From Dimorphilus gyrociliatus (Eukaryota > Animalia > Annelida), in contig CAJFCJ010000023.1 in NCBI GenBank assembly GCA_904063045.1, positions 1 to 64,000 on the forward strand: a stretch of 64,000 bases of DNA. Reading direction: 5' to 3'. The notes beneath the pieces were generated by a model. That model saw only the letters and a program-made list of their open reading frames with translations. It was not told where the DNA came from and made no database searches. Positions 1 through 44,124 of this stretch are shown here, in pieces (positions within the stretch are counted from its first letter, which is position 1; every line of letters begins with the position of its first letter). A program made the position numbers and the translations under genes.

Positions 1-290
1 AAAAATTAAAAGCTAATTCTAAGTATCCCTGATCAGCTACTGCCAAGAGTATGGTATTATCTATCGAAAGTTTTTCAACAGTCCTTCTGAGATTATCATC
101 TTCTAATCGATGTTTTCCTGTCACTTCTCCTCTATTCTATTCAAATTAAATATATCGTTAATTTATTCATGAATTTTTAATTACGTTATTTGTTATAAAA
201 ACTTACCTTTTTTAATAAAAAAATAACAAACAAACAACCTAACAAACCTAGAAACGTCCTAGACATACATTTCAAATTAAATACTTTCAT
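1..290 (-). CDS. Nucleotide-diphospho-sugar transferase (GT77/PF03407-like) Golgi type II protein, 5' part; runs off the window
   Basis: Exon 290-207 encodes MKVFNLKCMSRTFLGLLGCLFVIFLLKK (signal anchor). GT-AG intron 206-137. The next exon is in frame: NRGEVTGKHRLEDDNLRRTVEKLSIDNTILLAVADQGYLELAFNF, resembling the N-terminal 'ilt.~n.gy.d~~~Nw' motif of this family. Not in the ORF track. Confidence 0.6.
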
Positions 291-1748
291 GTCCGAACTT
301 TCTATGTAAAATAATAATATGGAGAATATTATCAAAATAGGAATATTCACTATTACACTTTAGCCACTCTCTGTCAGACGACGATGTGATACAATCTATC
401 GATTAGTACTGATATTAAAATATTTCTGATCACGTGACAGTTCAAGCTATCTACTGTCTCAAGCTTTTATTTATGTGGTGTTTAGGGAAAAAGAGCTTTT
501 TTTTATTATTATACATTAAAACCTAAAAACGTTGGAATTTTTGAGAGAAAAAGATATTGGATATAAATTACGAACCTCTAGGAGGTTGAGAAAATTTGAT
601 CCCTATAATTCTCTCTACAATATGAAAATTATTGCTATATTTAGATTAATAGCATAAGAGATAGTCTCCCTGACAACGCTGTGCAAGCTAGTTTGAAAAG
701 ATTTTCCTAAATCTGCACGATATATAAATATACGTAAATAATATATTATATAGGTTGCAATACTTTTTTCTATTCATTCTGGTAACTTGACTGAAGTGTC
801 CAACAGTCTTATGTCTTTTCTCCCAACAAAAGTTCAACTTTCATATTTTCATACCTACGTGTGACTATTAATCGATACAGACAGAGATAAGATTATTACT
901 TTAACACCGTGGCTAATAATATAATACGAAGATTATTTGTTATCAGTTTAGTGTAGTTCTTTTAGAACCTAATCCTAAAATTACCTATAATAAGAGACAA
1001 ATATGTATTAATGATTTTACATTTAACCTTAACCTTAAAGGGAAATGAAATCAAAAATAGTATTAAAGAGAAATAGAGCAAAAATAAAGAATATCTAACC
1101 TTAAATCAGAGAAAGAACAAATTTTTGATTAACAATAACCCCATTCACTCTATGTAAATATGACAAAATCTTTTTGGAAAGTCAGAAGAGAGAAAAAATT
1201 TCTTTTTAACAATATAATATCATATCTATGGGAAAATTGTATTTTACAAACAAAATATGTAAAGAGTATTGTGAATTGAACTAGAAATGTTCGAGAAACA
1301 ACAAGGTAATTAGGTAGTACTTAGAGTAGATTATCATGAGGCGTTACCCCACCCAAGAGTAATCCTATTGATTCTCAAGGGTTTTATAAGATTTCTCTTG
1401 CTTTATTTATAAGAATTATATATAATAAAGACTTTTACCTATATATTGGCGTTTGAGCAAATTTATAAAAACAAAAAAAAACGATATTATAAAAGTCATA
1501 TGCAAAAGAACACCAATTGCTCAACAAAGATTATAGTATATTTTATAGCTCTATACTATAAAAAGTCTAATATAACCGCTCTGTTTGCTTATTGGTTCAA
1601 TTTTTTCTCTCGTTTTCTTAATCCAAAACTGTAAGTTGATAATTTATTTAGGCTGAAATTCAATAGCTAAAGTTTTCTTGCAAAAAGAAAAGTTTGACTG
1701 TATTGCTTTATATCGTAAAAGCTAGTTATATTTTTTCTATTCAGGATT

Positions 1749-2893
1749 TTATACCCAGAGTCTGCTTTGTTTCTTCGATAGTCTACTGTAGAGACATGTC
1801 ATTAGTGAAGTTTTCTTTCTAGCAAAACTTCTTAAAACTCCATATAATCCATATGTTGAACCTTCTGTTATTGCGGCTTGATTACATTTACCCAAGAGTA
1901 AGAATTCTGTATATATATTTAAAATTTCTTGACAAGATATACTACTATCCCTGTAGTGTTTTTGTATACCTTCGATTAAATACGTTGAATATTTATTGAC
2001 AGTCTTTACATAATGCTTCGTAATAGAACTATCTAATGTAATGTATACAATTGACGATGTATCATCCCTAGGAGATATCATATGTTGAACGTCTAAGGCA
2101 TCATCAATACATTTCTCAGTCCATTTCTTTGGGTGATTATACTCAATCCAACCAGTTCTTATTTGTATGCATATAACATTTTTATACTTATCTAAATTAC
2201 TAACATGCTTCTGAAATTGGGCCAAGAGCAGTCCTTTTGGTTTGAATAATTTCTCAAAATAGTGCAAAAATATATAAGCGTCTGAGTTCTTTTTTAAGAA
2301 TTTCCTTACTGGAAGTTTAGCTAACTGTTTCACTCTTAAAAAATAAATAAAGCTTCTTATAGCAAGAATTTTCTCTTCACTACTCATTAGTTCTTTAACA
2401 AGGGTCAGGTTATTGCTAATAAAGTTAAAAGTAGATATTTTATGCTTGCTTAATTCATCATTATCCACCAATTGAACAGAATCAAGAGTAAAATACATAT
2501 TCATCGGACAGTTTTCATTCGGAATATTTGGAGTAATTAGAAGAGTTCTATTTGAGATTTCAGAAAAAATTTTACAAGATATTAATGCCCTCATAGTATT
2601 AGCTAATCCTCCTTCCGGAATACATAAGATATATAATTTTTTATTATCCAAATTTATAAGTTTAGTCTGTTTATAAAAACAATATGAACAATTTTCGATT
2701 ATTTTTAATATTAAACAAACATTTTCACCTTTTGAGCGTGGAATTTATAATGATTACCAATAGCATTATTACTAACTATATTAACTCCTTCTACAAAGTT
2801 ATTTTTGAGATCTTGTATATAAGTTAACGTTCCGTATATTAAAGCTATTAGGAGGCAGGAACCAAAAATGTAATATAATTTTCTTATTCGCAT
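1749..2893 (-). CDS. Fucosyltransferase (GT37/GT11/GT23 clan, GT37-like), two coding exons, about 360 aa, type II membrane
   Basis: Exon 1 2893-2729 (55 aa, TM anchor), intron 2728-2667 (gtgaaa...aaacag), exon 2 2666-1749 in frame. Motifs GGLANTMRALIS..SNRTLLI, ICIQIRTG, VYITLDS and EFLLLGKCNQAAITEGSTYG match alpha-1,2/1,6/O-fucosyltransferase motifs. Candidate 5'UTR acceptor at about 2925 and donors at 3315 or 3615. Confidence 0.8.
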
Positions 2894-4201
2894 GGTTCTT
2901 CAGTATCGATACAATGGCCTCTCTCTAAAAGAAAATGACAATATTAGTACTGTAATAATATTTGTTATCTCTAAAATACATCTGTAGTTCTACTTTATCC
3001 ATTCCGTAATATGAACAAGAATATAAGTATAATCATCTATAAAAAGGTTTCAACTGAAATCGATCTAATTCAACATAAGTAAACAAAACTTTTCTTTCAC
3101 TTGCAGACAAATTTAATAATGGCATATATTACTTTTTATCCAATCTTGTTTTTGTGTAAATCTCGCTAGGTGATAAGCTGTCTATTCTACATACATGTTC
3201 TATCTCTTTTTCTTTTCCTAATTCGTATACTTTCAACTGCGTTATAAAGATCACTACTAGAATTTTAATCCCAATATTTATCATTATTTTAAAAAAATGT
3301 GATAAGGTACATACCTGTATTGTAAAATATTGTATATAATATCATATCTCACCTATTTGTTTTAGTAGAAACGAAGGATTTTTGCAGTTTTTACGTTTTT
3401 TATCTTGCTCATTTACATTTATATATTTAGTTATTTTATTATTTTCAAATATATAAAAATTGGAAAAGTAAAGTCAACAAAACATTCTCTCTCAATATAA
3501 AGTATATATATATATATATAAATTTATATATACTGTATATATATGTAAATATACGTATACTATATACAAATTTACAAGTTTTCTACAGAAAATAATCTAC
3601 ATGAGAACGACTTACCTTATTTTTACAGAATATTAAAACTTCATATGAAATTTTTAGTGTAAATCTCTAGTACCTTTACTTATTCAGTTCTGTTTTTTTT
3701 ACCGTGCTGATAGATGGCGTTTTCACCACGTGCGTGGACTTGCTGAAGTTAAAGGGAGACGAAGGAAAGTGTATCAAGTCTTTTCTAATAATCTAACGTT
3801 TAATATAGATGTAATTATATATCTATTACAATGTAATTTTTCTGTGTTAGTTTCAATAAGCTTAGTATTTTCAAAGAACTATAATCTAATCCCTCATATA
3901 TTGATTTTTCTGTTATGAATATACCAAGAAACATTGTCAGAAGGAACCAGCTATCTCGCCTGCAAATACAATATCAAAAACCACTGAGCAAATGTAAATA
4001 ACAGTAATTGGTATTCTAATCAAAGAGTAGAAGAATTCTATGGACTTTATAAACTATGAAAGATCCACGAAATGCAAATATTTAATTTATACTCAATTAG
4101 AAAGATCACAGAAGAAATTTCGATTTGTTGCCCGACTTAACACTTTATGAAAACTCTTTCGCTGATAGCCTGTTGCGCATTCTACTTTATATTGTTAATT
4201 T

Positions 4202-4387
4202 TTTGATATACTTGGGCGTTAGAAAGGAGTGCACATGGTTATAGTCATCAGCTTTTCTTCTGTATTTTGTTGCTTGGTTTGTGATGTAATCTTCGTCACC
4301 GAGAATTCTTCGAGTTTCCCTTTTCTCATGTTTCCTTTCTACTTCCTCTCTGATACGTTTATATAAAGTTTTCTGACTTTCTTCTTC
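4202..4387 (-). repeat. 186-bp duplicate of coding sequence 10438-10623 from the titin-like gene
   Basis: By-eye alignment shows the same sequence (tttgatatacttgggcgttag...ctgactttcttcttc) at offset 6236, with no mismatch seen. Confidence 0.95.
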
Positions 4388-5021
4388 TGCTCGTCATACA
4401 ATTTCGCAAAGTCCCAATTTTTTCACTAGACTACTGCGACCTTCCACATCCATCCTCTTAAACTGTGGGAAGTTTCTCAAAGGGTGCGGCTTATCGCCTG
4501 CATAAAACTCTGACTCCCTTTTCTTTCCTTCTTTATGCTCACTCATGCCCTCATGGGTCATCATCTTACGTTGGTCTATCGCTCTTTCCAGTCCCTGACT
4601 TTGTACCTCGGTAGCTCTTGCCTTAACAGGTTCTCTTTTTTCATTTGTCTGAATTCAAACCGAGCTGTTTCTTCTTTTCTTACTCTTCTCTCCATTTCTA
4701 TCATTTCACTCAATTCGGCCAGCACATTTTCCTATTTTCCATCCTGCATTCTTCCCTATTTGTGTCAAATCGAAGAATATCATCCCCTTTTGGGGTGGTG
4801 TTAACTTCATCATCGTCACTCTCGTCTGTCATCTTATCAAAGGCGCTTAGATTTCCATTCTTTGCTTGGCATCGCGTGTTTGACGTGATGTTTTTCTTTC
4901 TTCCGTTCTCTGCCTGCTTTTCTGCCATTTCTGCATAATCTCTTTCATTTGCGCTGCCATACGCATTTCTTTTCCTCTTCCCTGAGGAGATACTTCTCTC
5001 ACTGTAACCTTAACCTTAACG
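4388..5021 (-). mobile_element. Degenerate BEL/Pao LTR-retrotransposon gag fragment (no LTR seen)
   Basis: Minus strand reads GDKPHPLRNFPQFKRMDVEGRSSLVKKLGLC(E/N)CM after repairing one frameshift. This matches the BEL gag pattern H.L..C..F..M....R...VKK..LC.NC. Purine-rich and more GC-rich than the flanks. Confidence 0.6.
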
Positions 5022-5748
5022 TTTTGGTTTGAATAATTTCTCAAAATAGTGCAAAAATACAGAGGCATCTGAGTTCGTTTTTAAGAATTTCCTTGCTGGA
5101 AGTTTAGCTAACTGTTTTACTCCTAAAAAATAACGAAAGCTTCTTATAGCAAGAATTTTCTCTTCACTACTCATTAGTTCTTTAACAAGGGTCAGGTTAT
5201 TGCTAATAAAGTTAAAAGTAGATATTTTATGCTTGCTTAATTCATCATTATCCACCAATTGAACAGAATCAAGAGTAAAATACATATTCATCGGACAGTT
5301 TTCATTCGGAATATTTGGAGTAATTAGAAGAGTTCTATTTGAGATTTCAGAAAAAATTTTACAAGATATTAATGCCCTCATAGTATTAGCTAATCCTCCT
5401 TCCGGAATACATAAGATATATAATTTTTTATTATCCAAATTTATAAGTTTAGTCTGTTTATAAAAACAATATGAACAATTTTCGATTATTTTTAATATTA
5501 AACAAACATTTTCACCTTTTGAGCGTGGAATTTATAATGATTACCAATAGCATTATTACTAACTATATTAACTCCTTCTACAAAGTTATTTTTGAGATCT
5601 TGTATATAAGTTAACGTTCCGTATATTAAAGCTATTAGGAGGCAGGAACCAAAAATGTAATATAATTGGTTTTTTGACATTGTTCTTCAGTATCGATACA
5701 ATGGCGTCTCTCCAAAAGCAAATGACAATATTAGTACTATAATAATAT
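5016..5748 (-). pseudogene. Truncated duplicate of the fucosyltransferase gene (start 5680, intron retained, stop 5016-5018 just past the breakpoint)
   Basis: 5022-~5748 aligns to 2235-~2960. It lacks the C-terminal catalytic motifs (IQIRTG onward). Confidence 0.9.
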
Positions 5749-6773
5749 AGTGGTCGACTAAAAAACCCAGACACCATGAGTTTCGATAGGCTAAACATTG
5801 TTTTTATTTTCCAGGTATAAATTATTATTTTTAAGTTGTATATTGTACGTATACATTCGTCAGCTATACTCTATTATAGAGAAGTAGTATTGAACCAGTA
5901 TTGTACTATGCGGAAAGCTCTGATAAAAACAAGCAGTATTGACCTATTTTTGCAGTATACACAATGCTGTTCTTCTTAACATGCATTAATCAGATATACT
6001 TCCTCCTTCTATGCTGATGCTAAATCTACTAACCCAATCAATTGAATATCATTATTAATGTAGAATATGAAAACGGTCAAATATACAATCCAAATGTTTT
6101 CTTGATTGTTGGACTTGTCCTATTAAAATTGTTAGATCTTAAGCAATTTTTCAACCTTCGAAATTCAATTATTATTCAGAAGAGGAAAAAAATAAAAAAT
6201 ATGACCATATTTAGAACTTTTCTTTGTCTTAAAATGTTACTTTTTTTTTGTCAACATTGAAATTTGTGAACTATCAACCTTTTAAAGAGTATATAAACCC
6301 TACAAAACTAACAGTTGATAGTTCAGTTTTCTAACCGTCAGCTAGTTGTTTAAACTAGCCTGTTTAGAACTAGAAACTCATTTTACTCAATACGTATTCT
6401 TTTTTCATATTTTTCCTATTAATATTCACAAATAGGATAATTTTGTCATTTTGTTTGCGATATTTTTTGAATGTTAAAGAGAGCTCAGAAACTTATTTCA
6501 CCGAAATATCATAAGCCGTCTATATCTATGAGTTACAAGGCGTGTCTTTTCAATTTGTAATTGTAATTGTGCCCTTCTACTGATAGAGCTTTCTCGCTGA
6601 AGGATTTGAATAAATCTTTAATATATTTTATAAGATTTCGTTTATTCTAAGAATTATCTGTTTTCAAGGTAGTTATTAAGCTTTTTTTGGTATTAAAATA
6701 TGCTTTACAAAAGACAAAGTGAAAATACTTAACAAATATTTTGAAGGGAAAATAAGGCCTATAATTCGTCAGT

Positions 6774-9700
6774 CTAGTCACTTTCTTCGCTACTCTCAGT
6801 TTCAGTATTTTCTGAACTAGATTCATTGTCATCATCATCATCATCATCACTATCATCATCATCACTATCATCATCTTCTCCATTGACTTCATCAGCGTCG
6901 CTTTTATCTTTTCTATCGTCTATTTTCTCTTTCACTTGTTCAACTGTTGACTTTTTGTTATCTTCTTTCTGATCTTCTTTCTTTTCCTCCTGCCCAACGT
7001 TATCATCCTCTTCATCTTCGCTAGATTCTTCACTACTTGTTTCACTACTTTCCTCGCTGCTTTCCGATTCAGTGTCATTTTTTCGTGATTCGGATTCGTT
7101 AGTTGAAGAACGTCGTGAACTATCGGTTGATTCAAAACTGTCACTTGTTGATATCGATTCAGATTTGGAGAGAATATTATCATTTGTCCCTGAATCTTTC
7201 TCTCTAACAACTTCTTTCTTACTTTCTTGGACAATCGTTTTAATAGTAACGCTTGTTTCAGTTGTTTCCATCTGCTCTGTCTTTGATTGTGTAACAAATA
7301 TTTTACCATCTATTTCTTCTTCCTTCTTTTCTTCTTCAACAACAATAGCCTTTGTCACTGTTTCCGTTTGATTTTCTCTGGAGATGTCATCTGCATTTTT
7401 AGTTTCGGAAATAGTAGTTTGAGATTCCAAGTCCTCTTTTATTTCTATTGATTTCACGACTTGAGATTTAACCTCGACACTCTTGTCAGATTCAGATACG
7501 ATCGACGAAGAAACATCAGAAACTGGAGTTTCCGACCTCGACGTAGGCGACGATGAGGACGTCACAGATTCAGAAACCTCTGAAGTCGAGGATCGTGCTG
7601 TAGAAGTTTCAGATTTAGAAGATTCTGAATAGGAAGATGAAGTTTTTGCTGGAGCGGATGATGAAGATTTCGTATTAGAAGATTCTGAACTTTCAGTTAC
7701 AGATGTTTTAGATTCAGAAGTATTGGATACGACGGATTCCTTTTCTGATACTGTGGATTTCGAGTCAGTCGATTCATCGGCCTCCGATGTTGTAGCTTCA
7801 GTATTAGACGTTTGTGAAGCTGCTGAAGATGAAATTTCGGAGGAATCTATCTCAGACTTTTCGTCTTTGTTTCCTTTTTCATTCGTAAAAACGTCAGGTG
7901 AATTATCTTCTTCAACTTCCACTTTAATATCAACACTGTCAACTTTTATCATTTCAGAACATACTATTTCTTCTTCAACAGTTTCATTCTGCTGGATTTC
8001 TTCTTTCTGATCGCTATCAACTTGATCTTTTTCAGCATTTTTCTCCAGCACATCTACGAAATCTTTAATTTCCTTTTCTTTATTTTCAACAGTGATTTTC
8101 TCTTCTACTCGAGTTTCCTCTTCTGCTTGAAGTTTAGTCTCAACAATTTTGGAGTCTGAATCCTCTCTCTCTTCAGCACATTTTGATTTTAGATCATCTT
8201 CATCAACTATATGATTAATAATAACTGATTCTTGTTCCTTATTTTTAATCTCTAGAATAGGTTTAGTCTGAATTTCTGCTGTTTTTTCATTCATATCAGT
8301 ATTATTCTCATTAGATGATTTATCCAGAATTTTCTCATTGTTAACATCTTCAGCAATTTCATTACTCTCAGCTGCAACTTCTTTTGTGGAATTTTCATTA
8401 TTCTCATTAACTTTTTTATCTAATAAAGCCTCTTTGTTATCTGAGTCATTGAGTAAATTTTGAGCATCATTGAAAGCATTATTTACGATTTGCTGTGAAA
8501 GATCGTTGAGTTTAGATTCGTAATTTTCTACGATGACCTCAGAGGAAACTTGTTCACTCTTTGTCATTTGAAATTCTTCAGTAGTTGTTGTCTTTTGAAC
8601 ATGATTATTAACTGAACATTCAATATTTATATTCTTTCCAGAAGATATTTCCTCTTCGTAGGGAAGTTTTTTAATAAATTTAGGTGGATATTTCCCTTCA
8701 GCATTAAGAGGAGTTTCGTGATCGAAAACGTATTTTTGAACTTCGATATCGTCCCTAAATCAATATTATTTATTAATACATTGGAGATATTTCAAGTTCA
8801 AAAGGTTAGAGTATATATACTGTATATTTATAAAAAAAACTTACCCTTCAATCCTTCTGGGCAGCATATTTATCCAACAGGTCGCAGCGATTTTACCATA
8901 TTGATTCTCAGCAGTAACAGCATAGTATCCAGCATCTGTTTCTAAGGCTGATCTTATCTGTTTGACACAAGTCATTATGTGTTTTTTTACTGTTTCAAAA
9001 CTATTATTTAAGGTTAATTACTTGAAGAATATAATGATTTCCAAAGGCAACCATTCGATGTCTTTCCGTATAAGTAAACTCTCTTGCGCCATCTTTTGAC
9101 CAAACAGCTATAAAATGAAATTTGTATTGTATTGGTTGAGAAATTCTGAAAAGGTTCACTTCCTTACCAACAGGCTTAGGATCGCCATCTATAACGACTT
9201 CTAAATCGATGGGATCACCTAAAGGTACGTTGGCCTTTGAAGGTAAAACTTTTAAAAACCAGGGTTTAGTTCCTTTTATTAAAGGTCCTCTATCGTCCAT
9301 AGAATAAGTCGGTTTATCCATAGTAGCATCAATACTATCCTCATCAACATAACGTTTCTTATTGGACAGATCTGATACAGAAATAATTAAGTATAATTCA
9401 GCCAATTAATTAAACTCTTTTTAAATAACTACCAGTTATAGTTACAGATGAACTACTAATAGTTTTACCAATACTATTAAATGCCAAACAAGAATACAGC
9501 CCCGAGTCAGATACTTGAGCATTTTTAACAAATAGCTTACAGGAACCGGCGTCATCGTTCGTTATTTGAACTTTTCCGCTTTCTCGAATAGTTGTATTGT
9601 CTTTCAACCTGATGAGATTAAAAAAATACATTTAACGAACATAGTTTATAATTAAAATAGAACATTTTACCATTTAAATGACGGTAGAGGATTTCCGGTA

Positions 9701-11951
9701 ACTTGAACGGATATTTCAAAATCATTTCCAACATCTTTCTGAACCATATTAGCTTCTTTTACGAAATGAGGAAATGTACCAGAATTTGGTATTTCGTATT
9801 CCTCATTAAAATCTATAAATTATTAAATAGAATAGTATTAAAAGTTATTTCTAAACATGTTTTTATAATACAGTTTATATATACAGTATATATAGTATGT
9901 ATTGTATATATTGTTTAAAGATGAAAAAACAATAGATACCATCTACTTCTAGTACTGCACTGCAGGATTTCTCTCCTTCTGAATTCCATATTTTTACTGC
10001 ATATATTCCGGCGTCAGAATGTTGAACATTATTAATTTCAAGAGTTAATAACCCAAAATCATTCTATATAGAGATTTTTGCTTAGGTTATTTCATTGTAA
10101 AGGTTCTATTTTAAGACAGAGAATTGTATTTTTTTTTACTTACAGTTATCCGTAGTTTTTCATCGCTTTTTAGTTCTTTTTGACCTTTGAACCATTTAAC
10201 TTTTGGGAAAGGATACCCTAAAACGCTACAAGAAAATTTTGCTATGCCTCTAACAATGGACCGTTTTGGTCTCAATCTTGCTGTAAAAGACGGGACTTCG
10301 GTGTATTGTTTTCTTCGTACTCGATGAATTTCTGGTTCTTCAGATCTACTTCTTTTAATTATAGAATGCTTTTCCCTAGGTTTCTTCTTCTTTTGATAAA
10401 TTTCATCGTATTCCGCTCCAGCATCGTGATAGATCGATTTGATATACTTGGGCGTTAGAAAGGAGTGCACATGGTTATAGTCATCAGCTTTTCTTCTGTA
10501 TTTTGTTGCTTGGTTTGTGATGTAATCTTCGTCACCGAGAATTCTTCGAGTTTCCCTTTTCTCATGTTTCCTTTCTACTTCCTCTCTGATACGTTTATAT
10601 AAAGTTTTCTGACTTTCTTCTTCATCATCTTCAGCAATTTGTTTTTTAGTTCTCATTTTAAGTACACTTTCATCAATTTCTTCTCTTTTCTTTCCGTAAA
10701 CCTTTGAGCGAATATGTTTATTGAAATTGAAAGAATAGCTAATATATTAACCTTTTTCAGAATGTATGCGCTGTCCTCAGAACCAGGTGGAAGAAGAATC
10801 TTCTCACGTACTTTAATTCCAATGATATTGGAGTCAGGAGATTCTCCCATTGCTCTTAATTCTTGCTCTGATAATTCAAAATATCTGATATTCTGATATA
10901 ATTCAACATCGCTGGGAAACATTCGTCTATTTCTTCGAACAAAATCTTCCATTGATGACATTTTATCTTGAATGTTTCTTGTCCTACTAACAGCATAATC
11001 TATGTGACAATTACCTTCTTGCTCAGACATTCCCCTCTCCGTTTGGTGAAATTCTGTCATGGCTGTTGCTTTTTTCCCAGATCTTAGTTCAAGAACTTGA
11101 ACGTCGTTTGGTGTAAAATCTGGGGGTTCGGCCCATCTGGACATAGAATAATCGCCAGTCGTAGAAAGTGAAGAACTATTCTCAATACAATCTTTCAAAT
11201 CAACAATATTTCGTAAAGAGTTGATCTGCTTGTCATTTCCTCTATCAATTTGTCTAGTTAAAGAAGAATTATGATTCGAATATTTCGTAACAGAAACATC
11301 TCTCTCCTGAGAATATCTATTTGTACTGGTAGCAGGAGATTTTGATGACGAAAATGTTGATGTAGCTGTTTAAATGAAAATAGTTTAAGCAGAGAAGATA
11401 GGAGAAGAGAGATTTTAAAATATATATATAATCAGAATAATTAAATGATTAAACAAATTCAACATTAAAACTTATGTTCACATGAATATTTAAGGTATCT
11501 GCCTTAGTTTGTTTATCAATTTTGTCTGCTATTAATTAGCTATGTGGTTCTTTTTAGTATGGAATAGTTCAGAAGTTTGTAATATATGTTAGAGATTTTT
11601 TGTTTGGCTTTAAATTTTACTCTATAAGCAATAAATATTTCTATAAAATATCTCACTTAGATCTGTTTGTCTCAGGGCTGCTAATTCTCTTTCTTGGGAC
11701 AATCTTCTTAACTTTCTAGCAGCAGTTCTTTCTTCAATTTCTCTTGTTATTGAATCAATATCCACAGATTCAGCTCTTAATCTTCTTGGTCCATTTTCTA
11801 AAGACCTATCTTCAGAGAAACTCCTTGTATATCTCGAATTTGTGTATCGAGACCTTTCGGAGAACATTCCATAGTTCCTTGTTAGATTGTCAGACTTACT
11901 GGTAGGCCTATTGTTTTCTTTATTTCCCCCATACCATGACAAGTAAGACAT
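6774..11951 (-). CDS. Titin/twitchin/UNC-89-like multi-Ig protein with a long acidic disordered C-terminus (multi-exon)
   Basis: I-set Ig motifs in successive exons: PSFTARL..FSCSVLGYPFPKVKWFK; DAGIYAVKIWNSEG; DSGLYSCLAFNSIG; PWFLKVLP..LEVVIDGDPKP; DAGYYAVTAENQYG; PPKFIKKLP. Last exon 8754-6774. First exon from ATG 11951 (MSYLSWYGG...). It may be joined to the upstream Ig/FN3 exons. Confidence 0.8.
6829..6875. repeat. Imperfect (ATC)n microsatellite encoding the poly-Asp tail of the titin-like protein
   Basis: tcatcatcatca...ctatcatcatc translates on the minus strand as DDDSDDDDSDDDDDDD. Confidence 0.9.
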
Positions 11952-12064
11952 ATTTCGAAAAGTTCTAAAAAAGAGAAGTCGATTGAAAAGACGATTCTTG
12001 AAGCTATTTGTGGCGAATCAGCGAAATCTCGTTCGTCTGGTAACAGCTAGCCAATCCTAGGAAT

Positions 12065-15402: not shown

Positions 15403-16380
15403 TTAACATTTTGTTTTAGTTGATTTTAAACAAAAACATTGTTTAATTCTATTCAATTTCAATAAGAGACTGCATTTAAAATCTTTATTAGTTGTCCCAT
15501 AGATAATACTATTAAAGAATCCATTCAGAGCTAGAACATAAATTGAAATTATACTAAATAAGTTATTACCATTTTGTCTTAAAAGAAATATAATTATTAT
15601 ATCAACAACAGTTGGAGTCCATGATAAGTAAAATGTCATTACAATTAAAAATAGGGTTTTCATTCCTTTCATACTATTTGATGATTTATTATTTCTAATT
15701 GCCATATTTAAATTTGTAATTCTCATTAATCTCTTTTTAATAATCGCAATATGGATAAAAATAAAACAAAGTAGAAAAGTTGTTACACCATATTCAAGAA
15801 AGAAGCCTGTAGTCCATAAAATTATGTTATCTTCTAGTGTGATTACACATAAAAAAGGGGAAAGGTATAGTTTGGCACCATTGCTTCTCATAGCCAATGT
15901 AATACCCAGAACGTGAAATATTACATTTAAAAGTACCAATATCATAGCCTTCTTCTTATTGACAAACCTCTGATATAGCATTGGTTTGGATATAAATGCA
16001 TACCTATCCAAGTTTAAAAACAATAAGGTTAAAATTGAAAATCCACTTGCTGCAGGGAACAATGTAGCTTGTATTAAGCAGTTACGTTTCGATAACTTCT
16101 TTGTTAAATCGGCAATGAGTGTTGACCAACAAAGAAACACTCCAAATAAAATATCCGCAGTGGACAGTATTAGCATAAGTAAACCATTTACGTTGTATAA
16201 TTTTGTTGTTGTTAAAATGGTACTGATGGTGCAAATATTTGCAATTAAAATTAGAGCAAAAATCAAATAACTGCACCGGTAAATCATATGAATATCCGGC
16301 ACCAAAATATATTCGTTTTCCGTTTCGTTGACAACGGGACAATAGAAACAGGTATAGTTGTATTCACTCTTAAAGTTCAT
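15403..16380 (-). CDS. Orphan class A (rhodopsin-like) GPCR, single coding exon
   Basis: Seven hydrophobic segments, TM2 ILSTAD, DRY (NLDRY), TM6 FYLSWTP, TM7 NSIIY. First ATG at 16380; the track start at 16401 is a GTG. Confidence 0.9.
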   Translation of the reverse strand: MNFKSEYNYTCFYCPVVNETENEYILVPDIHMIYRCSYLIFALILIANICTISTILTTTKLYNVNGLLMLILSTADILFGVFLCWSTLIADLTKKLSKRNCLIQATLFPAASGFSILTLLFLNLDRYAFISKPMLYQRFVNKKKAMILVLLNVIFHVLGITLAMRSNGAKLYLSPFLCVITLEDNIILWTTGFFLEYGVTTFLLCFIFIHIAIIKKRLMRITNLNMAIRNNKSSNSMKGMKTLFLIVMTFYLSWTPTVVDIIIIFLLRQNGNNLFSIISIYVLALNGFFNSIIYGTTNKDFKCSLLLKLNRIKQCFCLKSTKTKC

Positions 16381-17535
16381 CTTGAAATAACTTTGTACCA
16401 CTAGTAAACAATTGAAAAACTATTGTGATATAAACTCATAAGATTAATTTTAGGTACCTGGAAAATATACTTTAATTATTCTTGATGATGTAAAATTGAA
16501 AAGAAGATCAGATAATCAATTTTCTTTTTGTCTTTGTGTAACCCTGACAACTTGTAGCTTGAAAAAAAATTGAAAAAATAAGGGAGAAAGAAAAAGAGAG
16601 ATATATAGATCCAAGGAGGTAAAGTCTATCTGCACAGAAAGACAGAGTGACAGAGATTGAGGCCACTCACATACAGGAGATGACAGAGACGGACACATAG
16701 GGAACAACAAATCAGAAAAAAATGCTGTATCTTTCACTTATACTTATTAAAATTAAAAAAACTGAAGGATGAAAAGAAATATTAATGCCTGAAAAGAAGA
16801 GGAAACCGTTTATTGGTTCCTATCTTCTTCCTGTTGAACAATCTATCAATGTCAAGTATATACTGAAAAGGCACCTTCATCCGTAAAGGCGTATGTCTCT
16901 TTAACATAAAGAATAGGATAAAAATTGTGTACGTTGTAAAATATTTACTTTAAAGAAGTGTTTAATAACATTTCATTTTTTCTATTTTATATCAATCTAT
17001 GAATAATTAAAGAGGACAACCAAACCTAATAATTAATATGAACGTATAACTTTGAGGTTTTTATAAGGGAGAAAGGGAGTTTTCACTCTAGATTGTCTTG
17101 ATAAACATACAAATCTCTTTTTTCGTTTTACTGTTTTGTTTTTTCTTTCTGGTAGCGCCACCTTATTTATTTGGAGTAAGAATCATACTACATGTTTCTA
17201 TCTACTATCATTATCTATTTTCTTATTTTGATAGGGAATAAATAAATTTACTATTCTATTTAATTTATTCAAGCATAAATCAGATCGCACTGTAAGTATT
17301 TCGAGTATTTTAATTATCATTTGCATCCGAAAATGAAGAATTTAAAAAAATATAGGTCAAAGTAAAATAAACGCCTCATTATATAATGGATCTTTGATTG
17401 ATGGTGGAAAAACTCCAATTATTAGTCAAAAATGATAATTCCAATGAAAATTCACAATTGGACTGTGCTAATATGAGTTTATATTTACAATCTTTCATTT
17501 ACAGTAATAGAAACTACTACCGTTGGGAAAAAGAA

Positions 17536-19057
17536 ATGTCGGCTAAGGATATCATTATTCTCTCTATATTCTTAACAGTGTTAATAGAGAGAAGCTTTGA
17601 ATATTGCTCTACGGAAGAAAAATCTAATAGACATTATGGAACTTATACGTCATACGATAATTCATTCGAAGAGAGTCAGTTGACTAATTTGAACAGTAAT
17701 GTAACAATGATATATTTCATTGGGAGGCATGGTTCCAGACAGGAAAGTGGTAGTGGAATTCGAAACTGGAGAAAGTATTTACCCGAATTACAAGAAATAT
17801 TAGAGAAAAACCAATTGGCAGTTGATGTTTGTAGAGAAGATATTGAATCCATTATTAATTGGAAGTTAAATATAAGCATTAAAGACAGCTATAAATTACT
17901 AGAAATTGGTAAAAATGAGCAAAAATCAATAGCGAAACGACTTTTAATCAAATTTCCGCGTTTTTTTAATAATCTTCGAAATGTTGAACAATTAGATTTT
18001 CAATCTTCAAATACTGATAGAACTTATCAATCCGCTTATGAATTTCTTTCAACTATTTTTAAGGGTAGAAATATTAGTTTTAATATTAAAAGATCGCGTA
18101 AATCAGATAACTTAATTAGGTCATACAAGAATTTCGATCCATCGTATACGAAGAGATCTGAAAAGATTCAATTAAAAATTGAGAATTTTCTCAAGTCTGA
18201 TGAGATACAAGAAATTTTAAAATCAATACCAATGGTAACAAACTTAAATTTAGATTTTCATCCTCAATTACTGTTGACTATTTGGAGGTCATGCGCATAC
18301 GAATATCTATCCTTAGAATCATCGCCATGGTGCGCAGTATTTAATGACAAAGTATTGAAAATTCTCGAATTTCTAGATGATGCCAGATACTATAACCTTC
18401 AAGGTTATGGGCTATCACCAGCTCAAAAGTCTGCTTGTGTAATTATAAGAGATGTATGGGAAAATATCCATCTGTCAAAGGCAGGTATGTATTTATTATT
18501 ATAACTATAAATACTTCCATCTCCTGTCCGTTGGTCTCTGTTAAATAGAATCTAGCAGGTTTGTTGGACGGTGGGGTCATACTGGAACAATGAATACTTT
18601 ATACACAATATTGAATCTTTTTAACCAAGATGATGATAAATTAATGATTGGAGATATTCATCCAAATCCTAAGAGAAAATGGCGAATGAGTAAGATAACG
18701 CCTATGAGTGGAAATTTAATATTTGTCCAATATTCAATAAAAGAACGCTTTTATGTAAGAATACTTTTATCTACGACAAAACAGTTATAACAATCATTTA
18801 TTGGTCTATAAACGTTTTCAATTATCTCTTCCTTTCAGATGCAAGTCTATCATAACGAAAGGATAATAAAGCTAGACAGTTGTAAAAGCGAATTATGTAG
18901 TATGAAAGAATTAAATGAATCATGGAATATGATTATTCATAATTGTAACATTGATATCAACTATTTAAATTCTAGCGGTTGTTCGTTGCATTATTCTCTT
19001 TACTTTAATCTTTTATTAATTAATTCTCTAATATTATTTTACTTAACATATATTTAA
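17536..19057 (+). CDS. MINPP1: Multiple inositol polyphosphate phosphatase-like histidine acid phosphatase (3 exons)
   Basis: Signal peptide MSAKDIIILSIFLTVLI; RHGSR; CAYE..SPWCAVF; LEFLDDARYY..GYG; KWRMSKITPMSGNL. Exons 17536-18484, 18549-18754 and 18839-19057 are phase-consistent. Hydrophobic C-terminus. Confidence 0.85.
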
Positions 19058-37149: not shown

Positions 37150-37871
37150 AAATACAGCTGTAATAAGGTGATATAATATGTTCATATCATGTTACATACT
37201 AATATTTTTGAATATTGACTTATTTCAGCAAAGCAATATTAATATTTTTATTCATTATGATCGTAATACAATTAGATAAAAATCATCTCGACCAATCATG
37301 ACTTCAAAATGCTCATAATGCTACAGTTCACATCTAATTTTTACATAGTCTATACTTCTGACTCTTTTTTTATCAAATTTATAGTTTACCACAATATTCA
37401 TTATAACAGAAAACGACATCAAAGACAGTTAAAAATAGATTTACTTTCAGCTATTGACCTGAAAACTTTTAACAAACGACAGGAAGTTCATTGATAACAT
37501 TAAATGTAACAAAACCTCTTTAAAATCCGAAAATCTGTATATTTATTTGAACAACACTTACAACAACTTACTACAAACGGCTAAAGCTGGTTACAACTAT
37601 GCAAATGTAGGGAAAAATTTATTAATCAACAACTAATTATTTCTATCACTAATTCACAACAAGAGAATTACAACTTGTTTAAGTAAAATACATCAGATTT
37701 AACAATTCTGTTCTTCTGGACAATTCAAACGCTTTTAAAATGGTATACAAAATTTCGCACTGTTCTTGCCATGAACTCTATTTCACGTATACTTCTTCCT
37801 TCCATTCACTTAACATCCGTGAAATTATTCACGTTTACTACATCAAAGTGCATCACAAATACCAAATATAA

Positions 37872-37947
37872 ACTTCCGATCTACTGATAAACAGATGCAC
37901 CTTGTTATTAAACTTATCTTTTTCTCACGATTCATTCATTATATAAA
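37872..37947 (+). promoter_or_regulatory. Protease promoter module: ETS-like (ACTTCCG), GATA (TGATAA), GATA (TTATCT), TATA (TATATAAA)
   Basis: Motifs at 37872, 37885, 37914 and 37940, with ATG at 38009. Retained largely intact upstream of the other similar protease copies. Confidence 0.55.
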
Positions 37948-38008
37948 CGCCATGAAATTCTTCAATTTCATTATTCCACTTTGAATAACAACATCTCAAC
38001 AAACTATC

Positions 38009-39028
38009 ATGAAGGCTTTTGTTCTCTCTCTTCTCCTTGTTGCTGGTTAGTACATCAACCTTTTAAATAAAATGCAACAATATTTCTCTTTCTTGCATCT
38101 TCAACACTATTTGTTCATTTACAGTAAGTGCAGCTCCTAAACGCCCATTTGCTCAAGTCACTACAAACTTGGGAAGAATTGTTGGTGGAACTGACGCCGT
38201 TAAAGGATCTTGGCCTTGGCAAGTGTCCCTTCAACGATGTACTAGTACTGGATGTACACACAAGTAAAATAACATTCAATTAAAGCATTCATCAAATGCT
38301 AAACAGTCTTTTAATTATCATCCATCAGTTGCGGTGCAGTTGTTTTGAATGAAAATTGGGTGTTGACTGCTGCCCACTGCATCCAGAATCCGGATCTCGA
38401 ATCACATCGTTTAGTTTTTGGTCTTCACGATCAAACCAAACAAGATGAAGCCGTCACTCTTAAACCATCAATTGTTAGATTCCATCCTGATTTTATCAAT
38501 GACGGTCCTTCCGGATTCCCCAACGATATTGGTGTTATGAAACTAGAATCTCCAGTCGATCTCTCCAGACCAGGAATCAGTGCAGCCAAACTTGCTCCCG
38601 CCGATGACTCCGCCCTTGACGGAACCGAATGTACTCTAACCGGCTGGGGAAGATTATACGGATTCGGACCATCTCCCAACATCCTCCAACAAGCCAACTC
38701 TAAGGTATTGACAACTGAAGATTGTCAACTTCAAGGAATTCCTCAAGCAGAGAGACAATACCATATTTGTCTTAATGACGATGACGAAACGACTGGAAGT
38801 TGTAATGTAAGTATTTCAGAGTGAATGTCTTGTTTTGGATAGATAATAATAGAATATTGTAAAATTCAGGGAGACTCTGGTGGTCCATTGAACTGTGACT
38901 TGAACGGTGAAAAGATTGTTGCTGGAGTAACATCATTCGGAGTTTTCGGTTGTCCACCTACTGCTCCATCAGTGTACGCAAGAGTTTCGCAATACTTGAC
39001 TTGGGTCAACGACAACACACAAGATTAA
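38009..39028 (+). CDS. S1A serine protease copy P1 (chymotrypsin/elastase-like; similar to earthworm fibrinolytic enzyme A), 4 exons
   Basis: Signal, propeptide NLGR|IVGG, TAAHC, NDIG, GSCN|[17 protein letters not shown]. Confidence 0.95.
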
Positions 39029-40274
39029 ATATTTCACAATTGAGATTTCTGTTTTAAATAAATAAAAGATAAATGTTTTGAAAAAATATGAATTTTGTTT
39101 TGTTATGAAAATGCAGTTGCATTTTATCGAGTAAACATTTTCTTTAATTTACACTTTTCCCAACATAATTCAAGGCATAAGAAACACGTCAGAGCTTTTC
39201 TGTTCTTGAAAATAAATACAAGCTGTCGACGTGTAGACTACAACCCTCATGACATATTATAGAAAATCAGATGCCTTAAGTACATCACCTCTTTTAACTT
39301 TGCTAGGTTTCATTAATATACAGTGAAGTCAACTTTTTACCGTCTTTAATTGTTAATTGATTTTTCCTCCTCAGAAGAAAATTTCTTTTCTTACTAATGA
39401 AAAGACAATTGTGAAACGTCCCTTTTTTTCTCAAGTAGCAGAGAACAATTATTCGAATATTGCTAGAACTGCGATCACACATCATTGTTTAGAGTTGTTT
39501 AGTTCAACTAAAATATAGGTTTACTACCTTTTAATTAAACTTCAAAGATAGGAAAGTCACCAGTTGGAAAATTTCACATGATGGAATATGAATCTTTTTC
39601 AGTTGTTGAAACTGGAGATGCAATCAACTCTTGTCTGTAGTGCTTGTAGGCTGGACATTCATGTTTTACCCATTTTATCTTTTGCCACCTGGAAATGACT
39701 TCTTCATATTATTTTGTCTAAAACCCTAAACCAACAAAATATCTTTTAATCTCTTTCACAAGTTTCTGATGAATCGTTAAGTAATTTAAAAAATTCGAGG
39801 TCATATGAGGGTTAAAACAGTGTTTGATGACTTCATGCTTCATTTTATCATCATGACAAGTTATTATCTGACTGATGAAAAAGTTGTGTTCATTAGCTAC
39901 ATTCACGTACGTCTTCCTGTTCAACAGGCAATTTGCTGTGGCTGAATACATGTGTCGTTGTAGTAGTTTTCATCAGGAAAAAAAATCTGATAAGGCTATA
40001 AATAGAACCACTTTCTCCGTCTATGTGCTATTTGTTCTACTAACTACCGATAGTGTCACGCCAGTAGTAAATACAATGAAAGCGACCAACAGAAGTCGGA
40101 AATTCTATTTATAGATACATAGTACGTATATTTCCGGCATCAATCTTGATGGTTAAAAATATGCTCACTTCCGTTGAACGATATTCAACCGTTTCTCATT
40201 CCTTTTTCACCACATGTCGTTTGTATATAAACGATGCAGAATTCAGTAAGATCATTGAATCTGTTTGGAGCAAC

Positions 40275-41311: not shown

Positions 41312-42673
41312 ACTATAAATTTCCTCTATTTTGAATAAATACAGATTTTACTTTGAATTCAACATAAAACTCTTTAGTTTAAGTTTTCACAATTGACACT
41401 TTAATTATAGCATGTAATCGACAATATAACAATCAACAATTCAGATGTTTTTTGTCTCTGCAGCATATTTTATGCGCAAATATAAGACAAGGCGAATTTG
41501 TTCTTGAGATGTCAATGCAACAAATTCAAACTATTTAAATATAAGTGATCCATTTTTTCACCAATTTATTAATGTTTTCATTTTCATCCGTCTTAGTAGC
41601 TGTATTTCTGCAAGAATTTCACTGAGCATGTATATTAAAATATCAGTTTAAAGGCTTTCAGCTTCAAGATAAACCTTTGCTTATCAAAAAGATTAACATT
41701 TTTTAACGATCACTTGTTTGTTATGCAAATATTGTTTTTTAATTTGGGTTACAACTTTTATCCGCACTTAAACTGGGGAAATTTCCTTTTCGTCCAATTT
41801 GCCAGTTTACCACGACTCTCCGATTGAAGGATGGATTCATCAGAAACACGTTGATGTCTTTTTAATATTTCCTCTGTTCATCATTTTCCGGAAGGGAAAG
41901 CTTCAGTTTCTCGAAATATTCGAAATTTCTTTTCCAATCCCTCTTTTATGGGAATGAGGTGTATTTTCAGTATCAAATCTGTCTTTCAAATTTGTTTACA
42001 CATGCCAAACATCTCTTGTTTTTCTTCCCAAACATACATGTCCAAAATGTTTTATTCATCTTTTCGCCTTAATTGTACATCCATAGCAGTCACACGCAAA
42101 AGAAGGCTATTTGCATTCAGAGCAAAATTTGCCGTTGCTATACAATATTACTCTTAATCATTAGTTCCTTGCAATAGTTTTAAGCAAAAATAACATTTCA
42201 ATCTGATCTATTTTCGTGTTTCTATTTGTAAAAATACTGTTTCATTTATGAGCAAGCATTTTCCTTTCATCAATTACTTCCGATTCATGTCTAACATCAA
42301 CTTCTTCTTCCATCGCAGAGCTAAATCATTCTTTGGGCTCAGAGAGTGATGCTCAAAGGTGGCCACATTAGTTATCTTGAATTCTCAAAGCGATTCCTAT
42401 TTTTTAGGACTATAACAAAAAAAAGACGGAAATTTTTCAACTCCAAATTTCGTAATTAGCCTATTTTGACTTGAATCTAACTTAAAAAATATGTCTTTCT
42501 TTATAAATTGAAAGTTATCTTTGTTGCTAAATATAAACTTCCGATCCACTGATAAACAATTGCACTCTTTAGCTAAACTTATCTTTTTCCCACGGTTCAT
42601 TCATTATATAAACGCCATGAAATTCTTCAATTTCATTATTCCACTTTGAATAACAACATCTCAACAAACTATC

Positions 42674-43694
42674 ATGAAGGCTTTCATTCTCTCTCTTCTC
42701 CTTGTTGCTGGTTAGTACATCAACCTTTCATATAAAATGCAATAAATCTTCTCTTTCTTGCATCTTCAACACCATTTTGTTCATTTACAGTAAGTGCAGC
42801 TCCTAAACGCCCATTTGCTCAAGTCACTACAAACTTGGGAAGAATTGTTGGTGGAACTGACGCCGTTAAAGGATCTTGGCCTTGGCAAGTGTCCCTTCAA
42901 CGATGTACTAGTACTGGATGTACACACAAGTAAAATAACATTCAATTAAAGCATTCATCAAATGCTAAACAGTCTTTTAATTATCATCCATCAGTTGCGG
43001 TGCAGTTGTTTTGAATGAAAATTGGGTGTTGACTGCTGCCCACTGCATCCAGAATCCGGATCTCGAATCACATCGTTTAGTTTTTGGTCTTCACGATCAA
43101 ACCAAACAAGATGAAGCCGTCACTCTTAAACCATCAATTGTTAGATTCCATCCTGATTTTATCAATGACGGTCCTTCCGGATTCCCCAACGATATTGGTG
43201 TTATGAAACTAGAATCTCCAGTCGATCTCTCCAGACCAGGAATCAGTCCAGCCAAACTTGCTCCCGCCGATGATTCCGCCCTTGACGGAACCGAATGTAC
43301 TCTAACCGGCTGGGGAAGATTATACGGATTCGGACCAACTCCCAACATCCTCCAACAAGCCAACTCTAAGGTATTGACAACTGAAGAATGTCAACTTCAA
43401 GGAGTTCCACAAGCGGAGAGACAATACCATATTTGTCTTAACGACGATGATGAAGAGACTGGAAGTTGTAGAGTAAGTATTTCAGAGTAAATGTCGTGTT
43501 TTGGATAGATAATAATAGAGTATACTAAAATTCAGGGAGATTCTGGTGGTCCATTGAACTGTAACTTGAATGGTGAAAAGATTGTTGCTGGAGTAACATC
43601 ATTCGGAATTTTGGGTTGTCCACCTTCAGCTCCATCAGTGTACGCAAGAGTTTCGCAATTCTTGACTTGGATCAACGAAAACACACAAGATTAA
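42674..43694 (+). CDS. S1A serine protease copy P3
   Basis: Near-identical to P1; GSCR|GDSGG, SFGILG. Confidence 0.95.
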
Positions 43695-44124
43695 TTATTT
43701 CACAATAATAGGCAATCAAATATAAATTTGCTTTATTTTGAATAAATACAGATTTTACTTTGAGTTCTACATGAAACGAGTTTTCACCGTTATTGTAGTT
43801 TTAAAAATTGCAGAAAGTTTGTGGTTAAATAAGTGAAATAGTGAAATAGTTTTATGGAATTTTTTGTGTTTTTTGAAGATTCACAGATTGTATTGTAGAC
43901 TTTAACCGAATAATTGCGGCAGTGTTTTAACATTAAAACGTAAAATGTTCAAGATAACATGGAAATGTGGAGAATATGGTTTATTAGTTTTTGCATAAAG
44001 TTACTAGTTCACTTATTTTTTTGTTGAAAAATTCATTTTTGTGACAGAATATTTTTGTTAAGTCATGTGAAGAAGATTATTAATAAAAATATATTATAAA
44101 CAATGACGAATATTTTTAGGACTG

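Follow-up and report, generated by a model that had tools for sequence, protein, structure and literature searches.

A mosaic of neighbouring gene pieces and BEL/Pao DNA in the annelid Dimorphilus gyrociliatus that looks like a scar of repeated break repair

How did pieces of two neighbouring genes come to lie on either side of a retroelement fragment, and do they add up to a gene? The question is raised by a 1.5-kb block in the tiny marine worm Dimorphilus gyrociliatus, within the first 64 kb (positions 1 to 64,000) of contig CAJFCJ010000023.1 of assembly GCA_904063045.1; this whole stretch is referred to here as the window. An earlier note, made from the sequence alone, had proposed that multi-template switching, or else reverse-transcribed RNA patches, fused a fucosyltransferase (FucT) copy, a BEL gag piece and a copy of a titin-like exon into a chimeric proto-gene. 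All three components of this mosaic are confirmed, with refinements (Table 1); the block is non-coding and has the look of a common scar left by several rounds of break repair, not of a new gene.

Table 1. The block, its donors and neighbouring features, in window positions
Feature	Position	Strand	Description
Probable filler donor	1024..1038	+	Probable local donor of the 15-nt filler core; exact match
FucT-like gene	1749..2893	-	Intact; exon 1 2893-2729, intron 2728-2667, exon 2 2666-1749
FucT donor segment	2235..2961	-	68 nt 5' of ATG, exon 1, intron and 144 exon-2 codons (139 of the listed ORF)
Exon patch	4202..4387	-	186 bp, identical to a stretch within one exon of the adjacent Ig (I-set) domain gene; young
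BEL/Pao fragment B	4388..4609	-	Last part of gag, then the beginning of the following ORF
GGT	4610..4612		3-nt insertion at the ~730-bp gag deletion junction, from alignment against L007 and L036
BEL/Pao gag fragment A	4613..5003	-	gag aa 138-268 of the relative L034, with stops and frameshifts
Filler	5004..5021		18 nt between gag and FucT copy; holds the TAA that ends the FucT frame
FucT-like 5' copy	5022..5748	-	Truncated; ends before the conserved IRTGW arginine motif
Identical tract	5136..5667	-	532 bp with 0 mismatches to the intact gene; contains intron 5515-5454
Ty3/gypsy LTR	5844..6402	+	Truncated and internally deleted; abundant young family
Patch donor	10438..10623	-	Charged linker directly upstream of an I-set Ig domain

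The pieces and their donors

The earlier note had derived the segment at 5748-5022 from 2960-2235 and a further 186 bp from the titin-like exon at 10438-10623, and comparison within the window bears out both derivations: 5022-5748 repeats 2235-2961 in direct orientation over 727 bp, with 21 mismatches and 0 gaps, and the exon donor and 4202-4387 differ at 0 of 186 positions. BEL/Pao gag DNA does lie between exon patch and FucT copy, at 4388-5003; the gag piece that had been drawn as 5021-4388 is in fact two fragments, and 5004-5021 is filler. The host donors share their strand with the block and the copies stand in direct orientation, with donor distances of 2.8 kb for the FucT piece and 6.2 kb for the exon patch, in line with the roughly 3 and 6 kb first estimated, and of 4.0 kb for a 15-mer within the filler. 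Each host donor segment is single-copy in a search of the 78-Mb assembly; the only near-identical matches to the host-derived pieces in the worm's own genome are 2235-2961 and 10438-10623, and the block with its flanks is likewise single-copy, with no second copy of the block found.

The intact FucT-like gene was analysed exon by exon. Its intron is a 62-nt, GT-AG, phase-0 intron, and exon 2 has no match in Pfam, in PDB sequences or in a large protein database; no sequence profile places the protein in the GT-B fucosyltransferase superfamily (NodZ/FUT8/O-FucT/plant FUT1-like). Its ESM Atlas neighbours carry NodZ, O-FucT or FUT8 domains, and a Foldseek search with a weak AF2 model (pLDDT 53.5, pTM 0.58) returned, among the matches listed to rank 50, the fucosyltransferases AtFUT1, FUT8, NodZ and POFUT1 at TM ~0.5, the sole non-fucosyltransferase listed being trehalose-6-phosphate synthase at rank 50. 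An alignment of six paralogs has the IRTGW motif (R165) invariant. The family numbers ~9 intact and ~10 fragmentary members in the genome, some clustered on one contig and some internally deleted; since the other paralogs are only 49-56% identical in protein sequence, there is no other recent duplicate. In the exon donor gene, Pfam places an I-set domain at aa 122-177 of ORF 10111-10656, and a further I-set match lies within 9410-9631.

A search of the gag piece for a full BEL element elsewhere in the genome, as the earlier note had suggested, found one, L034, with DUF1759, Peptidase_A17 and DUF5641 domains (Pfam). The piece is 75-92% identical to other genomic copies: fragment A reaches 88% with L035 and 92% with L036, and fragment B resembles L034 6126-6336 at 75%, with tblastn matches to gag aa 509-548 and ORF2 aa 6-35. 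The two fragments are colinear, with a ~730-bp internal deletion between them that is joined by GGT; L036, the closest relative, runs uninterrupted through the 4609/4613 breakpoint. Decay by internal deletion is common both in the FucT-like family and in these TEs. No local donor for the gag DNA and no BEL LTR near the block were found.

An LTR of another kind had been overlooked when the block was described as having none in view. The Ty3/gypsy LTR starts 95 bp from the block, which it does not bracket and from which it faces away; it is 88-94% identical to a 936-bp LTR that starts with TGTAC, ends with GTACA and whose copies are ~99% alike (40 scored of 650 first-look candidates), and it carries a 194-bp deletion at 5954|5955 and has lost its last ~183 bp. 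A complete copy, L039, codes for RVP, RVT_1, RNase H and integrase, and the family has the TG...CA termini, the PBS after the 5' LTR and the RVP-RT-RNaseH-IN order of Ty3/gypsy elements; it is probably Dingle, a name inferred from PMC7854359. As a candidate for the missing BEL LTR, 5844-6402 was rejected: it is gypsy-type and has no similarity to BEL gag/pol.

The idea of a chimeric proto-gene is not supported. No reading frame crosses any junction: the filler supplies the TAA that ends the FucT-copy frame, stops and frameshifts break the gag frames, and a stop codon stands directly upstream of the exon patch in the patch frame. A search of 1-12000 for ncRNA found none. Annotators should treat both the truncated FucT-like ORF and the copied exon part as pseudogenic.

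Unequal ages and a perfect tract

All 21 mismatches in the FucT copy fall within 5060-5135 and 5668-5739 and amount to 21 in 195 edge positions (~11%), and the 532 bp between them match the intact gene perfectly; an identical run this long arose in 0 of 200,000 shuffles in a permutation test. The 186-bp patch is also identical to its donor, which at the FucT edge rate has P ~ 6e-10. With FucT edges that are ~11% diverged and a core and a patch at 0%, the single multi-template event of the earlier note's model is not supported. The 532-bp tract is probably a gene-conversion tract from the intact gene. Non-allelic gene conversion between nearby paralogs leaves a perfect tract in a diverged duplicate just as seen here, and the window offers a parallel, a BEL LTR pair whose two repeats differ by 6-8% and yet share a perfect tract of 468 bp, so local gene conversion is active. 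Conversion accounts only for the identity pattern of the FucT copy; it explains neither the junctions nor the exon patch, which has no flanking homology.

Junctions, filler and competing origins

Neither the BEL relatives nor the FucT gene have sequence homologous to the filler, whose 15-nt core is identical to 1024-1038 on the same strand. This 15-mer has 2 copies in the window, where 0.01 are expected, and 7 in the 78-Mb genome; we roughly estimate the odds of a copy this near by chance at ~4e-4. Other short local templates, sought as 13-mers, occur at chance level only. The 15-mer's probable donor lies ~700 bp beyond the FucT stop codon; the FucT donor and this one follow each other in colinear order, 2961 to 2235 and then 1038 to 1024. 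A telomere-like source of this TTAAGG-type filler was rejected; the genome has no such arrays. Searches for the nematode marks SL1 and TTAGGC likewise found nothing.

That colinearity is what a decayed tandem paralog would leave: a whole-gene FucT duplicate that took a BEL/Pao insertion in or behind it and later suffered deletions, with only the exon patch, and perhaps the 15-mer, as repair filler. The ~11% edge divergence would mark an old copy, and the family, with its fragmentary, clustered and internally deleted members, provides precedents. The homology, however, breaks off abruptly at either end of the FucT copy with nothing beyond, diverged sequence included, and no FucT remainder or BEL sequence was found in 2962-4201; at least three independent deletions sparing a 15-nt island would be required, and the remaining paralogs are too distant for another recent duplicate. 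We consider this origin unlikely.

The colinear 15-mer does count against reading the block as a repair duplication, as it could be all that is left of a longer duplicate which once took in the entire gene with its 3' flank.

At the gag B/exon junction, the one junction where both parents are readable, the run GAAGAAG had been proposed as microhomology; it lies wholly within the exon piece and BEL relatives differ there, so that at most 1 nt is shared. This bears on the idea that a single replicative event, whether MMBIR/FoSTeS or serial polymerase-theta switching, built all the pieces. Several short segments with nearby donors, joined head to tail in direct orientation, jumps both forward and backward within ~10 kb and a templated filler at one junction are what such switching would produce. 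The block departs from MMBIR/FoSTeS in that its segments differ in age, that the readable junction has 0-1 nt of microhomology rather than at least 2 nt, and that one of them, the gag DNA, comes from a TE for which no template exists nearby. The earlier note's idea of template copying is partly right, and the single event does not fit the unequal ages; we regard such an event as quite improbable. With polymerase-theta end joining (TMEJ) the block shares a short templated filler of 15-18 nt at a deletion junction and the 3-nt insertion elsewhere. The templates used in TMEJ are usually found no more than tens of bases from the break, whereas the only filler match here is 4 kb away, and the 186-bp and 727-bp pieces are far above typical TMEJ inserts.

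No poly(A) tail and no retroposition-type TSD was found at the junctions, including the 3' end of the exon patch, and the block boundaries carry no TIR or TSD, as the earlier note had observed. A search for inverted repeats or palindromic termini around the block gave nothing beyond weak, AT-rich pairings of the kind expected by chance, and these do not coincide with its boundaries. Gene capture by a Helitron or a Pack-MULE, or transduction by an LTR retrotransposon, could likewise set co-oriented fragments of different host genes beside a TE; the block differs in being single-copy and in having no TIRs, Helitron-type termini or bracketing LTRs. Terminal repeats of a Pack-type or Helitron element bracketing the block, which the earlier note had named as evidence against its own proposal, were looked for and not found.

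Under an RNA-mediated origin, a retroelement reverse transcriptase would have jumped between gag RNA and transcripts of host genes, or a break would have taken up fragments of cDNA, as was reportedly shown for Ty1 in yeast by Moore and Haber (1996) and by Teng et al. (1996). All pieces are sense-oriented, the FucT piece starts 68 nt 5' of the ATG at a plausible transcript start, and the gag fragment is internal and without LTRs; the intron sits inside the later conversion tract, and its presence is therefore compatible with an original copy that had none. Against this stand donors that are immediate neighbours, which fits DNA copying and not cDNA drawn from an RNA pool, a filler donor well past the stop codon, and junctions that lack poly(A) and TSD. 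The proximal duplications of a human survey never carried poly(A) either (PMC2671141). We judge an RNA origin very improbable.

Still less credence goes to the idea that the block is an artefact of assembly, in which a chimeric read was used or haplotypes were wrongly merged close to the end of the contig. The block does lie 4-6 kb from that end, and the assembly was made with PBcR, Quiver, Pilon and HaploMerger2. Against this, there are five junctions within 1.5 kb, with fillers of 3 and 18 nt, the FucT edges are diverged, and no other assembled copy matches the gag piece more closely than at 88-92%; a ligation chimera or a merge error produces none of these features.

Proposed repair patches beside a decaying retroelement

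Donors that are unique, nearby and in direct orientation, the absence of poly(A), TIRs and a second copy, and a 15-nt third donor together argue for template copying during DNA repair or replication. We favour, at a probability of roughly 45%, the reading that the block is the scar of at least two error-prone double-strand-break repair steps around a decaying BEL/Pao remnant, with later gene conversion. In its favour also stand the fillers of 18 and 3 nt, the near absence of microhomology, the abrupt ends of the FucT homology, with flanks in which neither a FucT remainder nor a TE remnant is seen, and the two ages of the pieces. Under this account a break at each edge of the gag remnant would have been patched by copying nearby unique DNA, either as a repair-mediated duplication or as filler DNA that arose when synthesis-dependent strand annealing switched templates. 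An older event may have set the 5' part of the FucT gene, together with the 18-nt filler templated ~4 kb away, beside gag fragment A, and a younger one may have set 186 bp of the Ig-domain gene exon from 6.2 kb away beside fragment B. The gag remnant would have lost ~730 bp and gained a 3-nt insertion, and the intact gene, 2.8 kb away, would later have overwritten a 532-bp part of the old FucT copy by ectopic conversion. The data show the pieces, their donors, the junction sequences, the unequal ages and the absence of a fused reading frame; from these we infer how the breaks were repaired, which event came first and that the gag remnant was already in place.

On our best reading the block belongs to a known class, the repair-mediated duplications of Pace et al. 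2009 (PMC2671141), who described 824 human insertions into TEs with donors <5 kb away, a mean length of 162 bp and a maximum of 619 bp, some of them chimeras of two donors, with fillers of 1-68 nt and with proximal duplications that never had poly(A). The likeness extends to a unique donor on the same chromosome a few kb off, an acceptor associated with a TE fragment, a patch of 186 bp that is near the mean, multi-donor chimeras, short fillers, the lack of poly(A) and the duplication of exons and UTRs. Unique donors, a distance of ~5 kb (slightly exceeded by the exon patch) and the absence of poly(A) and TSD, three of the marks by which the class is recognised, are found here. The block differs in that its patches lie at the edges of the TE remnant and not demonstrably inside it, that the 727-bp FucT piece exceeds the proximal maximum, that the exon-patch donor at 6.2 kb is just past an ad hoc 5-kb cut-off, and that the host is an annelid, a group outside that survey.

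By itself a single block alters no current view. On this reading it is a clean, dissectable case, from neither a vertebrate nor a plant, in which break repair has set parts of adjacent genes next to a dying transposon. The probable local template of its rare 15-nt filler can be located precisely, and the block illustrates how later gene conversion blurs the record, possibly re-installing an intron. We also entertain, as a long shot, that TE removal by break repair routinely leaves patches of neighbouring exons and promoters in this strongly compacted annelid genome, or else that one catastrophic multi-template event with junction-proximal hypermutation was at work. If such patching is routine, TE graveyards would keep supplying duplicated and shuffled exons. 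A genome-wide census of patches in Dimorphilus could show the part of deletion-biased repair in genome compaction.

Composition of the mosaic block and its donors

Repeat search and pairwise alignment bear out both host pieces reported in the earlier note: 2235-2961, covering the 5' part of the intact FucT-like gene (1749-2893), is copied directly at 5022-5748, and 10438-10623, an exon stretch of a neighbouring Ig-domain gene, is identical to 4202-4387. In the whole-genome search each of these donors is single-copy, and a search of the same genome (the 77.9-Mb assembly of 349 contigs, the window being the first 64 kb of its contig C23) returned no further copy of the block or of its junctions; the published assembly, ~78 Mb, was built with PacBio, PBcR, Quiver, Pilon and HaploMerger2 (PMC7854359). 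The 144 exon 2 codons in the FucT copy correspond to 139 codons of the listed ORF of exon 2. The piece at 5021-4388 is gag as had been proposed, but its first part, 5021-5004, is filler and the gag itself lies in two fragments.

Features of the block and its surroundings (window coordinates)
Feature	Position	Strand	Content
FucT-like 5' copy	5748-5022	-	68 nt 5' of ATG, exon 1, intron, 144 exon 2 codons
Intron within FucT copy	5515-5454	-	62 nt, GT-AG, phase-0
Filler	5021-5004	read on minus strand	18 nt; TAA closing FucT frame comes from filler
Gag fragment A	5003-4613	-	corresponds to L034 5001-5392
GGT	4612-4610	read on minus strand	joins gag fragments A and B
Gag fragment B	4609-4388	-	corresponds to L034 6126-6336
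Exon patch	4387-4202	-	copy of 10438-10623
Unique intergenic DNA	below 4202 to intact FucT-like gene, ATG at 2893	minus-strand reading order	
Truncated LTR	5844-6402	+	194-bp internal deletion; 88-94% identity to 936-bp LTR

The gag DNA between the two host pieces is 75-92% identical to several genomic loci, and a full BEL element does exist elsewhere in the genome: L034, a complete relative, codes for DUF1759 (gag), Pao peptidase A17, an integrase zinc-binding domain and DUF5641, which is the BEL/Pao signature. Fragments A and B correspond to separate stretches of L034, so that the mosaic lacks the ~730 bp of gag lying between these; L036, the closest relative (92%), is uninterrupted across this breakpoint. 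In a second BEL/Pao remnant (48180-49384, +), gag (L034 4711-4979) runs straight into pol (8138-9174) at a join with GGT-type microhomology; only 24 nt separate the gag breakpoint of this remnant from the gag start of the mosaic (window 5003 (-), L034 5001). These 24 nt, absent from both remnants, hold a perfect 12-bp palindrome (GAGCAGCTGCTC in the relative L035); the shared gap could mark a site prone to breakage, the two remnants could be parts of a single element, or the agreement could be chance. Between 37800 and 53500 lies a cluster of BEL-type LTRs, ~1.2 kb each, direct and inverted, in an LTR-internal-LTR-internal-LTR layout with heavily deleted internal regions.

The gene that donated the 186-bp patch encodes I-set Ig domains together with long tracts that are acidic and rich in Ser; its earlier description as titin-like is a loose one. 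An open frame of 597 aa (6774-8567, -), high in Ser, Glu and Asp and with no Pfam match, is presumably its low-complexity C-terminal exon. Just past the gene lie a single-exon rhodopsin-family GPCR ORF (15403-16401, -; 7tm_1, E 2e-20) and a histidine phosphatase branch-2 ORF (17398-18504, +).

Ages and junctions of the pieces

The 21 mismatches of the FucT copy are confined to 5060-5135 (10) and 5668-5739 (11), and the 532 bp between these zones are identical to the donor, an identical run of a length reached in none of 200,000 random placements of the mismatches. Since the edges are ~11% diverged while neither the 532-bp core nor the 186-bp patch differs from its donor at any position (P ~6e-10 for 186 identical bases at the edge divergence rate), the mosaic cannot be one neutral event. 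One MMBIR-type event, the multi-template switching of the earlier note, is thus weakened by the differing ages of its pieces, and also by a lack of microhomology: at the gag B/exon junction the BEL relatives differ from the exon donor right to the breakpoint, with at most one base in common, which leaves the proposed GAAGAAG microhomology unsupported. Most naturally, the FucT copy is read as old, and both the 186-bp patch and a conversion tract donated by the intact gene, 2.8 kb off, as recent. A BEL LTR pair elsewhere in the window (37864-39040 and 42529-43706) bears this signature too, a 468-bp perfect tract in repeats otherwise 6-8% diverged, which suggests gene conversion. The intron of the FucT copy falls within the conversion tract and is therefore no proof that the original copy arose at the DNA level.

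FucT homology stops abruptly at both ends of the copy, with none beyond them by local alignment, and no remaining FucT gene or BEL sequence was found in the flanks of the block. The 15-nt core of the filler (5005-5019) recurs on the same strand at 1024-1038, ~700 bp beyond the FucT stop codon and colinear with the FucT donor; 0.01 matches are expected in the window (shuffles), and only seven copies exist genome-wide. Either 1.2 kb was passed over in the copying, or the copy originally spanned the entire gene. No reading frame crosses any junction and the gag frames are interrupted by stops and shifts, which tells against the suggested chimeric proto-gene; the truncated FucT copy cannot be an active enzyme, because its ORF ends before the family's invariant IRTGW arginine motif. 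An assembly artefact might be suspected so close to a contig end, but five junctions with fillers and the diverged edges of the FucT copy speak against it, and the block structure is real and well resolved.

Proposed break repair and the alternatives

In the survey of Pace et al. 2009 (PMC2671141), repair-mediated duplications are TE-associated insertions from unique donors, mostly <5 kb away, with a mean length of 162 bp (maximum 619 bp) and fillers of 1-68 nt; some are chimeric from two donors, and poly(A) never occurs on proximal cases. The block's features agree with these, and we therefore favour at least two break repairs followed by gene conversion. A BEL remnant would already have been resident and decaying at the site; breaks at its edges would each have been patched by copying nearby DNA, the pathway and order of these events being those we infer, and gene conversion would have come after the patching. 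Patching mediated by reverse transcriptase is a rival to which the sense orientation of the pieces and the plausible transcript start at the FucT-piece boundary are congenial, but the position of both donors next to the site argues against it; inspection of the junction found no poly(A) on the exon patch. The block is best read as a repair scar of a known type, and not as a proto-gene.

As had been noted, no TIRs flank the block. The earlier impression that no LTR was visible does not hold, since a truncated gypsy-type LTR lies 95 bp away, but the block is not bracketed by it or by other terminal repeats. Its 936-bp counterpart, with termini TGTAC...GTACA and a PBS after some copies, occurs in many genomic copies ~99% alike (40 scored of 650 first-look candidates). 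L039, a full element carrying two LTRs, codes for protease, RT, RNase H and integrase; as it resembles BEL in neither gag nor pol, the truncated LTR is unrelated to the gag piece. N runs, either withheld or gap sequence, occupy the post-integrase part, where env would lie, of gypsy-type elements that are putatively Dingle (L039 5791-6727, L038 5407-8461). The truncated LTR lies ~370 bp beyond the stop of the 6774-8567 frame. The ~80-bp self-complementary, AT-rich repeat at 3495-3574 is perhaps a MITE-like element or a low-complexity palindrome; across the genome, on either strand, numerous loci match it (82-100%, over 40-80 bp).

The FucT-like family

Searched exon by exon, the FucT-like gene had no match in Pfam, PDB sequences or a large protein database, nor did a profile of six paralogs. 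Its ESM Atlas neighbours bear NodZ, O-FucT or FUT8 domains, and Foldseek with a low-confidence AF2 model (pLDDT 53.5) gave, among the matches listed, almost only fucosyltransferases (AtFUT1, FUT8, NodZ, POFUT1) at TM ~0.5, so that a putative label of fucosyltransferase-like is reasonable. In the family, ~9 paralogs are intact (aa identity 49-56%) and ~10 members are fragments, truncated or with internal deletions. This abundance of intact and fragmentary members is in keeping with a rival to break repair, in which the FucT piece is a decayed tandem paralog struck by BEL. Nine FucT-like loci (L041-L049) lie on C56, C59, C61, C66, C76, C100, C145, C163 and C194, mostly small contigs; at L047 3784-4194 an internal deletion joins the N- and C-terminal parts of a paralog in frame, and an N run at L048 3444-4354 adjoins a fragment. 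Dingle, a Ty3/gypsy family, is the most frequent transposon in the assembly (PMC7854359), and Dingle-type LTR or ORF fragments occur in all four FucT-like neighbourhoods examined (L046-L049).
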